Below are positions 19,348-22,300 of a stretch of DNA of 60,338 nucleotides, in pieces. The DNA is from Octopus sinensis (Eukaryota). Made by a program: the position numbers and the translations under genes. Position 1 is the first letter of the stretch; every line of letters starts with the position of its first letter. The DNA lies in assembly GCF_006345805.1 (NCBI RefSeq), contig NW_021832252.1, positions 1-60,338 of the forward strand, in the 5' to 3' direction. The notes under the pieces were generated by a model. The model was given only the letters and a program-made list of their open reading frames with translations, ran no database searches and had not been told where the DNA came from.

Positions 19348-22300
19348 CTATGGTTTGTCCCCTGTATTAATGCATTTGTGTCTATTTAAGTACCTCTTCT
19401 GAGAGAATGATTTACCACAGATATAGCACCGATATGGTTTCTCACCTGTATGAACTGATTTGTGAGAATCAAGGTAACTTTTTTGAGAGAATGATTTACC
19501 ACAAATATCGCAGTGATGTGGTTTCTCTCCTGTATGAATGTGTTTGTGAGAATCAAGATTACTCGTATAACAGAATGATTTACCACAAATATCGCAGTGA
19601 TGTGGTTTCTCTCCTGTATGAATGTGTTTGTGAGAATCAAGGGTACTCATATAACAGAATGATTTACCACAAATATCGCAGTGATGTGGTTTCTCTCCTG
19701 TATGAATGTGTTTGTGAGAATCAAGATTACTCGTATAACAGAATGATTTACCACAAATATCGCAGTGATGTGGTTTCTCTCCTGTATGAATGTGTTTGTG
19801 AGAATCAAGATTACTCGTATAACAGAATGATTTACCACAAATATCGCAGTGATGTGGTTTCTCTCCTGTATGAATGTGTTTGTGAGAATCAAGATTACTC
19901 GTATAACAGAATGATTTACCACAAATATCGCAGTGATGTGGTTTCTCTCCTGTATGAATGTGTTTGTGAGAATCAAGGCTACTCATATAACAGAATGATT
20001 TACCACAAATATCGCAGTGATGTGGTTTCTCTCCTGTATGAATGTGTTTGTGAGAATCAAGATTACTCGTATAACAGAATGATTTACCACAAATATCGCA
20101 GTGATGTGGTTTCTCTCCTGTATGAATGTGTTTGTGAGAATCAAGGGTACTCATATAACAGAATGATTTACCACAAATATCGCAGTGATGTGGTTTCTCT
20201 CCTGTATGAATGTGTTTGTGAGAATCAAGATTACTCGTATAACAGAATGATTTACCACAAATATCGCAGTGATGTGGTTTCTCTCCTGTATGAATGTGTT
20301 TGTGAGAATCAAGGGTACTCGTATGACAGAATGATTTACCACAAATATCACAGTGATGTGGTTTCTCTCCTGTATGAATGTGTTTGTGAGAATCAAGGCT
20401 ACTCGTATGACAGAATGATTTACCACAAATATCACAGTGATGTGGTTTCTCTCCTGTATGAATGTGTTTGTGAGAATCAAGGCTACTCGTATGACAGAAT
20501 GATTTACCACAAATATCACAGTGATGTGGTTTCTCTCCTGTATGAATGTGTTTGTGAGAATCAAGGCTACTCGTATAACAGAATGATTTACAACAAATAT
20601 CACAGTGATGGGGTTCTCTCCTGTATGAATGTGTTTGTGAGAATCAAGGCTACTCGTATGACAGAATGATTTACCACAAATATCACAGTGATATGGTTTC
20701 TCTCCTGTATGAATGTGTTGTGAGAATCAAGGGTACTCGTATAACAGAATGATTTACCACAATATCACAGTGATGTGGTTTCTCTCCTGTATGAATGTGT
20801 TTGTGAGAATCAAGGCTACTCGTATAACAGAATGATTTACCACAAATATCACAGTGATGTGGTTTCTCTCCTGTATGAATGTGTTTGTGAGAATCAAGGC
20901 TACTCGTATAACAGAATGATTTACCACAAATATCACAGTGATGGGTTCTCTCCTGTATGAATGTGTTTGTGAAATCAAGGGTACTCGTATGACAGAATGA
21001 TTTACCACAAATATCACAGTGATGTGGTTTCTCTCCTGTATGAATGTGTTGTGAGAATCAAGGCTACTCGTATAACAGAATGATTTACCACAAATATCAC
21101 AGTGATGTGGTTCTCTCCTGTATGAATGTGTTTGTGAGAATCAAGGGTACTCGTATGACAGAATGATTTACCACAAATATCACAGTGATGTGGTTTCTCT
21201 CTGTATGAATGTGTTTGTGAGAATCAAGGGTACTCGTATGACAGAATGATTTACCACAAATATCACAGTGATGTGGTTTCTCTCCTGTATGAATGTGTTT
21301 GTGAGAATCAAGGCTACTCGTATAACAGAATGATTTACCACAAATATCACAGTGATGTGGTTTCTCTCCTGTATGAATGTGTTTGTGAGAATCAAGGGTA
21401 CTCGTATGACAGAATGATTTACCACAAATATCACAGTGATGTGGTTTCTCTCCTGTATGAATGTGTTTGTGAGAATCAAGGGTACTCGTATGACAGAATG
21501 ATTTACCACAAATATCACAGTGATGTGGTTTCTCTCCTGTATGAATGTGTTTGTGAGAATCAAGGCTACTCGTATAACAGAATGATTTACCACAAATATC
21601 ACAGTGATGTGGTTTCTCTCCTGTATGAATGTGTTTGTGAGAATCAAGGGTACTCGTATGACAGAATGATTTACCACAAATATCACAGTGATGTGGTTTC
21701 TCTCCTGTATGAATGTGTTTGTGAGAATCAAGGCTACTCGTATGACAGAATGATTTACCACAAATATCGCAGTGATGTGGTTTCTCTCCTGTATGAATGT
21801 GTTTGTGAGAATCAAGGCTACTCGTATAACAAGATGATTACCACAAATATCACAGTGATGTGGTTTCTCTCCTGTATGAATGTGTTTGTGAGAATCAAGG
21901 GTACTCGTATGACAGAATGATTTACCACAAATATCACAGTGATGTGGTTTCTCTCCTGTATGAATGTGTTTGTGAGAATCAAGGGTACTCGTATGACAGA
22001 ATGATTTACCACAAATATCACAGTGATGTGGTTTCTCTCCTGTATGAATGTGTTTGTGAGAATCAAGGCTACTCGTATGACAGAATGATTTACCACAGAT
22101 ATCACAGTGATAAGGTTTCTCTCCAGTATGAACGACTTTGTGATAAGAAAGGGCAGTCTTTTGAGAGAATGATTTACCACAAATATCACATCGATATGGT
22201 TTCTCTCCTGTATGAATGGATTTGTGAGAAGAAAGGTGACTTTTTTGAGAGAATGATTTACCACAAATATCACATCGATATGGTTTCTCTCCTGTATGAA

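Follow-up and report, generated by a model that had tools for sequence, protein, structure and literature searches.

A stretch of 60,338 nucleotides of Octopus sinensis DNA (RefSeq assembly GCF_006345805.1, contig NW_021832252.1, positions 1 to 60,338 of the forward strand; hereafter the window) contains a C2H2 zinc-finger (ZNF) gene that carries 31 near-identical copies of one finger-sized unit. We interpret this as a very young, in-frame finger amplification in an octopod C2H2 gene that lacks an effector domain. Under this interpretation, the single-base deletions that interrupt the assembled frame are most likely consensus errors and the gene is not a PRDM9 orthologue; we give the interpretation as a whole a probability of about 0.6. 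Intragenic finger amplification in lineage-specific ZNFs is a known process, of which the feature is an unusually large new example. An earlier note, made from the letters of the DNA, had described the array as a PRDM9-like hypervariable minisatellite. Each of its factual details that could be checked was borne out, and its interpretation was supported in part.

The array was detected by Tandem Repeats Finder as an 84-bp tandem repeat at 19400-22805, with 40.7 copies, 92% matches and a score of 5337. Translation of the minus strand and segmentation between the final His of each finger and its TGEKP linker gave 46 finger units. Units 10-40 (22128-19535, minus strand) are 31 homogenised fingers, each of 84 bp (28 codons) and in frame, with an identity of at least 94%. 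The homogenised tract itself begins midway through unit 10 and ends midway through unit 41 (Table 1), in agreement with the 31 units of 84 bp placed at 19490-22090 in the earlier note. Unit 41 is a hybrid, with a front half that is array-like and carries the TGC codon and a helix that resembles finger 6 of a paralogue at 37078-37707. Unit 42 terminates in a TAG codon, and units 43-46 are decayed relics containing stops. The 42 units before the stop carry the C-X2-C-X12-H-X3-H pattern and TGEKP linkers of Krueppel-type C2H2 poly-zinc-finger proteins. The array also has the properties of a coding minisatellite, namely head-to-tail, in-frame units in the 10-100 bp range with higher-order structure. 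A plus-strand open reading frame (ORF) at 19407-20669 (420 aa) and several wrong-frame ORFs stay open across the array because the repeated unit has no stops in those frames. They are not genes, and naive ORF callers would list them.

Variable sites were numbered against the 84-nt array consensus (Table 1). The recurrent variants lie at helix positions -1, +1 and +3 and in one synonymous Cys codon, exactly as had been described, and the +1 and Cys codon changes (consensus positions 54 and 25) are of the CpG type, as had also been pointed out. Six propagated substitution events account for these variants, four nonsynonymous and two synonymous, against a chance expectation of 82% nonsynonymous. 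Five of the six fall inside the helix window from -1 to +6 (p = 0.005), in codons -1, +1 and +3; with positions 60-61 counted as one event, the figure is 4/5 (p = 0.016). The claim that variation is found chiefly at recognition-helix codons stands, with positional clustering that is modest. Two of the six events are CpG transitions. Contact positions +2 and +6 never vary, both being an invariant Ser, and +1, which is not a canonical contact position, does vary.

The variants combine into seven helix types, as previously counted: HTST (9 units), YTSS (7), YTSN (6), HTSS (5), YMST (2), YMSS (1) and YTST (1). Their order is structured. In units 10-31 the trimer HTST-HTST-YTSS recurs with a period of three (11/19 matches at lag 3, permutation p = 0.006), and lag 6 is raised as well. 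The C-terminal block of nine YTSN or YMSx fingers is also real: units 32-40 are contiguous and all carry TGC, and the chance of such contiguity is about 1e-6. Units 23-31 form an irregular middle of the array. All array fingers, together with finger 5 of the same gene, have a Cys in place of the usual Ser at helix position -2 (KSFC[HY]T, codon TGT after Phe), and only 2 of the 84 other fingers in the window share it. This Cys is a potential extra zinc ligand beside the His or Tyr at -1.

We quantified the uniformity of the fingers as the share of finger pairs that are more than 90% identical, after Oliver et al. 2009 (PMC2779102). This share is 51% in the focal gene, where 41 pairs are identical, and 0-20% in neighbouring genes. 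The focal array thus has the high inter-finger identity that marks concerted evolution in PRDM9. None of the mouse ZNFs other than PRDM9 comes near such finger-to-finger identity (PMC2779102). The share of amino-acid diversity at positions -1, 2, 3 and 6 (P), computed with indels masked after Baker et al. 2017 (PMC5519329), is 0.73 in the focal array and 0.32-0.43 in neighbouring genes. Among the rows of their Table 1 used for comparison, complete PRDM9 orthologues have P values of 0.41-0.68, and the rank-1 entries 0.50-0.68 (PMC5519329).

The origin of the repeated unit can be traced within the gene. Outside the array, the best match to the array helix is that of finger 5 (22465-22502); over 38 nt the two differ at 2 positions, the H/Y polymorphism accounting for one of them. 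The second-best match is finger 5 of the 37078-37707 paralogue, with 5 mismatches. Finger 5 had been proposed as the seed, and these figures favour it. In the 46 nt of linker and hairpin after finger 5 (22419-22464), 2 positions depart from the front half of the array units. Since the helix of finger 5 and the adjoining linker and hairpin both nearly match the array, the seed is probably the contiguous 84-mer 22502-22419. Exact internal repeats of 281 bp at a three-unit offset (252 bp) in block A and of 321 bp at a six-unit offset (504 bp) in block B, the longest in the array, join the period-3 order and the two sub-blocks with linked variants in upholding the proposal of unequal exchange. On this evidence, the array grew out of the finger 5/6 junction through unequal exchange or gene conversion acting in several registers. 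In the scenario that we propose, a single 84-bp finger unit would have been amplified in tandem, in frame and very recently, after the split from the seven-finger paralogue, its copy number rising through unequal exchange or gene conversion with registers of one, three and six units. Six point changes would have been carried along and copied, giving seven helix types in two blocks.

The timing comes from the closest paralogue (37078-37707), which has no array and shares with the focal gene the leader, fingers 1-6, the terminal finger, the stop after 'NTGDKP' and the relics 3' of it. Given a synonymous divergence (dS) of about 0.04 between the two, all 35 extra fingers of the focal gene would have been gained very recently, and the paralogue serves as the 'before' state of the array. 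Because the paralogue has the same relics past the stop, these are old 3' remnants, and the common stop and downstream relics indicate that truncation of the array predates the duplication of the two genes. The paralogue has AGG in place of the ATG and Ser in place of the first zinc-ligand Cys in finger 1; with its start codon and this ligand lost, it is probably a pseudogene. The comparison of nonsynonymous and synonymous rates (dN/dS, omega) between the two genes was considered as evidence and set aside as uninformative, since the counts are too few (21 nonsynonymous and 4 synonymous in all) and the paralogue is probably a pseudogene. At helix positions omega comes to about 2.3, a value based on just ten changes (9 nonsynonymous, 1 synonymous), and outside the helices it is about 1.

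The indels that had been reported in the array resolve into ten single-base deletions and no insertions, all within units 13-28: one each in units 13, 21, 23 and 28 and two each in units 22, 24 and 26. In about seven of the ten, the missing base belongs to a homopolymer of two or three bases. Two sites are recurrent, the A of GAGAAACC at consensus position 11 (11A, three times) and the A of CACAAACAC at position 74 (74A, twice). All five singleton substitutions also fall in units 13-28, three of them in units that carry deletions, and units 10-12, units 29-42 and fingers 1-9 are free of deletions. The resulting indel:substitution count of 10:5 differs from the 33:218 seen between the duplicated segments 1-5476 and 47492-52969 of the window (Fisher p = 7e-6), and from the 11:158 in the ZNF part of those segments (Fisher p = 8e-8). 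The ratio is thus 2:1 in the core, compared with 1:7 to 1:14 elsewhere in the window. Indel noise across the whole assembly was rejected as a cause, since the duplicated segments show a normal spectrum (218 substitutions, 33 indels) and the anomaly is local to the core. A deletion-only error of about 0.7%, restricted to that portion of a repeat which short reads cannot polish, has the look of an incompletely polished long-read consensus. The array core is a probable low-quality consensus, and the ten deletions are most likely consensus or polishing errors, possibly worsened by allelic differences; a collapse of two different alleles would yield the same picture. If the deletions are artefacts, the gene encodes 42 fingers in 1190 aa, its coding sequence (CDS) being 3563 nt as assembled and 3573 nt with the ten missing bases restored.

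The predicted product consists of a 16-aa leader followed by fingers only. The ATG, the leader and the first finger are kept in paralogues, and an O. sinensis ZNF has a homologous leader. Pfam searches with the focal ORF pieces returned zinc-finger families only (zf-H2C2_2, E = 3e-91 and 3e-97; zf-C2H2, E = 3e-48 and 1e-26), with no hit to PR/SET, KRAB or SSXRD. In tblastn searches of the whole window, four PRDM9-like SET-containing N-termini gave a best E value of 0.057, at 46924-47067 and unrelated to the gene, and KRAB and SCAN N-termini gave 0.64 or worse. The reported absence of SET and KRAB therefore holds across the 60 kb. Directly 5' of the focal ATG is a pyrimidine-rich tract ending in CAG, and a TATATAAA motif is found about 45 nt before the ATG. 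The conserved region of about 400 bp upstream has no open frame, with stops in all frames, and to judge by its sequence would be either a promoter with a 5' untranslated region or a splice acceptor. An upstream coding exon with an effector domain was rejected on account of these stops, and because the first halves of Octopus ZNF leaders match nothing in the window. A short upstream exon of about 20 aa is possible, since a good CAG acceptor adjoins the ATG. A protein search with fingers 1-12 returned generic poly-ZNFs only, at 63% identity or less, and no orthologue. When the array alone was used as the query, the helix C[HY]TS[STN]LDSHKH was found in no protein of the searched database; Octopus ZNFs, the best named invertebrate matches, aligned at 53-61%.

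Several observations weigh against our interpretation. In the assembled sequence the frame is lost after finger 12, and the C-terminal block reads in a different frame from the N-terminus. The 11A deletion is common to three YTSS-type units, so a real frameshift spread by exchange is a possible explanation. Decay is common in the cluster, where the closest paralogue and no fewer than three other members have the look of pseudogenes. There is no orthologue: protein searches and exact look-ups (with an intact paralogue and a 576-aa frameshifted ORF) found nothing closer than 63%. The ratio of four nonsynonymous to two synonymous events shows no dN/dS excess, the invariant Ser at +2 and +6 argues for low specificity and not for tuned binding, and the target and binding mode are purely conjectural. 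The broken frame, the recurrent 11A deletion and the 4:2 ratio would be expected if the gene were dead or dispensable and the array a runaway minisatellite evolving neutrally, with real frameshifts, expansion and contraction by unselected slippage or unequal exchange, and a helix bias that is an accident of which six mutations, two of them CpG transitions, were copied. The repeated 74A deletion in two units fits that account as well, as do the missing ATG and zinc ligand of the sister paralogue, the frameshifts in several neighbours and an omega near 1 outside the helices. We nevertheless consider it unlikely. The core spectrum of ten deletions, no insertions and five substitutions is unlike divergence elsewhere in the window, 24 deletion-free array units and 11 flanking fingers have neither a stop nor a lost zinc ligand, and the propagated events are concentrated in the helix window. 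An error in the assembled unit number, with a shorter array over-extended or haplotypes concatenated, is a very remote alternative. It would account for the visibly poor core consensus, and short reads are not uniquely placeable over most of the tract. However, no exact internal repeat exceeds 321 bp, so that the units can be spanned and ordered by any long read. The array is also not one block reiterated: its variants are linked within two blocks, and its middle is irregular. Both flanks run cleanly into unique fingers that match the paralogue.

It is improbable, if less so than such an assembly error, that the gene is a true functional analogue of PRDM9, that is, a second, independent hypervariable coding minisatellite under recurrent diversifying selection at its contacts, co-evolving with a fast-evolving short-period satellite or transposable element (TE), or with another self-eroding target. 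Alleles would then differ in unit number and order, and the messy consensus confined to the core could represent two collapsed alleles. A P value at or above those of the rank-1 PRDM9 rows used for comparison (PMC5519329), the extreme finger identity, the interdigitated higher-order blocks resembling those of PRDM9 alleles and the raised omega at helix positions, from its very few changes, all point in this direction. They have to be set against six events only, two of them CpG transitions, invariant +2 and +6 positions, the lack of KRAB, SSXRD, SET or any other effector domain, and the absence of an orthologous array from annotated Octopus proteomes in the protein search. The earlier suggestion of selection on binding residues finds no clear support in six events in a 4:2 ratio, with no dN/dS excess and +2 and +6 invariant. 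The young, in-frame amplification described above remains our preferred reading of the gene.

If translated, the product would be a multivalent nucleic-acid binder made of fingers only. Near-identical fingers, each contacting 3 bp, would read a target with a 3-bp period, or a 9-bp period for the trimer, and candidate targets would be a microsatellite, a satellite or a TE tail. Such a periodic target is a reasonable hypothesis. Blocks A (Ser/Thr) and B (Asn) differ at +3, which would contact the middle base, and the many Ser/Thr contact residues suggest weak specificity. In the general recognition code, Asn at +3 favours a middle adenine and Ser/Thr are weak and T-leaning; this is too uncertain to give a motif. 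Binding by the array would fit the repeat-tracking role proposed for lineage-specific poly-ZNFs.

Table 1 Features of the focal ZNF gene, its closest paralogue and the variable sites of the repeated unit. Positions are those of the window, except for the variable sites, which are positions in the 84-nt array consensus.
Feature	Position	Strand	Description
Focal C2H2 gene, conceptual CDS	19348..22910	-	ATG 22910-22908, TAG 19350-19348; 42 fingers
Upstream conserved region	22911..23335	-	About 74% column identity among paralogues
Fingers 1-9, diverse, without frameshift or stop	22129..22889	-	From segmentation
Finger 5 unit	22465-22548	-	Among fingers 1-9
Probable seed: finger 5 helix, TGEKP linker and finger 6 beta-hairpin	22419..22502	-	3 mismatches in 84 nt to a YTSS-type unit, about 96% identical
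Homogenised tract of 31 x 84 bp (coding minisatellite)	19489..22097	-	From Tandem Repeats Finder, segmentation and variant map
Block A, units 10-31	20291..22128	-	TGT Cys codon except in unit 14; H/Y at -1; S/T at +3
Block B, units 32-40	19535..20290	-	All TGC, all Tyr at -1; YTSN alternating with YMS(T/S)
Array core, units 13-28	20543..21876	-	All 10 single-base deletions and all 5 singleton substitutions
Fingers 41 and 42	19351..19534	-	Finger 42 closes the ORF
Degenerate finger relics past the stop codon	18943..19347	-	Shifted frames and stops; same relics in the closest paralogue
Closest paralogue, 7 fingers, without array	37078..37707	+	dS 0.04 to the focal gene over fingers 1-6
Variable site, T/C	25		First Cys codon TGT/TGC, synonymous, CpG
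Variable site, C/T	50		CAT/TAT, H/Y at helix -1
Variable site, C/T	54		ACG/ATG, T/M at helix +1, CpG
Variable site, AGC/ACC/AAT	60-61		S/T/N at helix +3; position 60 is G/C/A
Variable site, C/T	61		Synonymous within AAY

The focal gene belongs to a cluster. The window holds at least nine paralogous ZNF genes in 60 kb, on both strands and some of them head to head. Albertin et al. reportedly described lineage-specific C2H2 ZNF expansions in octopus and other coleoids in 2015, and the locus is assigned to this octopod/coleoid expansion on the grounds of its tandem cluster, the O. sinensis ZNF leader and the Octopus matches of a LINE in the window (described below). Several cluster genes are frameshifted and at least one is intact, with a 350-aa ORF from ATG to stop at 51960-53009. 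The gene at 32700-34050 has no change in unit length, but its in-frame fingers end at 33739. Internal block duplications occur in two other minus-strand paralogues, with a five-finger offset and 90% identity at 51935-52914, and with a four-finger offset, 85% identity and repeated LKCNLTTHK fingers at 42888-44593. Because other members show these milder duplications, finger exchange appears to be a habit of the cluster, of which the focal gene is the extreme case.

The segments 1-5476 and 47492-52969 are two copies of a unit consisting of a long interspersed nuclear element (LINE) reverse transcriptase fragment and a ZNF gene. Their divergence rises along the unit, from about 2 substitutions in the first 2.6 kb to 3% and then to about 18% in the ZNF part. 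The second copy contains the intact 350-aa ORF and the first is frameshifted. The pair could be a recent insertion of the same TE beside old paralogues, or the outcome of partial gene conversion. The ZNF paralogues at 4449-5768 (minus strand) and 6371-7800 (plus strand), both frameshifted, stand head to head with about 600 bp between their first fingers, an arrangement which suggests that their promoter regions are shared or overlap.

Direct repeats of 294 nt at 26099-26392 and 27824-28117 (98% identical, 1725 bp apart) flank a plus-strand ORF at 26807-27544, in a region of high GC content and strong GC skew. The ORF encodes tracts rich in acidic residues or lysine as well as a CCHC zinc knuckle (CYKCGLRGHIKAC), and has no Pfam family; it is a predicted gag-like or ORF1-like TE remnant. 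A LINE-type reverse transcriptase at 56935-59177 (plus strand) carries at least two frameshifts, and its homologues combine RVT_1 with a PHD finger (PF00628). The best named matches of this LINE, at 85-87% identity, are proteins of Octopus vulgaris and O. bimaculoides. An element of about 0.6-0.7 kb is present three times (23833-24522, 29371-30056 and 30607-31227) in mixed orientation and at 88-96% identity. It includes an inverted pair (29387-29578 and 30950-31141) and a 140-bp tandem repeat (24152-24408), and is probably a repeat resembling a short interspersed nuclear element (SINE) or a miniature inverted-repeat transposable element (MITE). Rfam and tRNA scans of the window found nothing, and Pfam searches with its non-ZNF ORFs found the reverse transcriptase fragment only.

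The PRDM9 signature consists of concerted evolution together with diversity at contact residues. A clean case other than PRDM9, from a mollusc whose ZNF expansion is famous, would bear on the question of whether this signature is specific to hotspot specification or generic to young, fast-exchanging arrays. The finding is not yet evidence of a new system. The seven-finger sister and the focal gene form a rare before-and-after pair for dating the birth of a finger array. A caution also follows, as the cores of such arrays are where assemblies fail, and automated annotation therefore calls the gene broken or misses it. Such annotation failure may be the reason for the absence of similar entries in protein databases.

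Compared with PRDM9, the octopus gene has the same unit size, 84 bp for a C2H2 finger of 28 aa, and the same tandem layout within one exon. In both, most finger pairs exceed 90% identity and identical fingers are interdigitated, and by the P metric amino-acid diversity leans towards contact positions, here -1 and +3. The octopus gene differs in its number of homogenised fingers, 31 where the PRDM9 genes that Oliver et al. list (PMC2779102) have roughly 7-15, in its invariant +6 and variable +1 positions, in showing no dN/dS excess, and in its location within a tandem cluster of ZNF-only paralogues in a mollusc. The description as PRDM9-like stands for the finger identity and P metrics, both taken within one assembled sequence, and fails for family membership, since KRAB, SSXRD and PR/SET are absent. 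The likeness is thus one of form, and on substance the case is thin, resting on few events.

The octopus gene can also be placed among lineage-specific ZNFs. Octopus genomes contain large lineage-specific C2H2 expansions that are expressed in nervous tissue and are proposed to track repeats (Holzinger et al. 2025, PMC12513265; PMC10547256). The locus resembles these coleoid expansions in its tandem cluster of multi-finger, effector-less genes in TE-rich surroundings, in its 'CDICGKSFS...HTGEKPY' finger style and in its short leader. It differs in that those papers describe whole-gene duplication and not one finger repeated 31 times within a gene, and in the protein search with the array no annotated Octopus protein carried the array helix. 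In primate KRAB-ZNF genes, unequal exchange within the array adds and removes fingers, and variability is highest at the contact residues (PMC3126818). Contact residues are the most variable in the window too, with entropies of 2.5-3.0 bits at -1, +2, +3 and +6. The focal gene lacks the KRAB domain that defines the vertebrate KRAB-ZNF class, and where that class shows occasional duplications of a single finger or a few fingers, the octopus array comprises 31 copies that are at least 94% identical.

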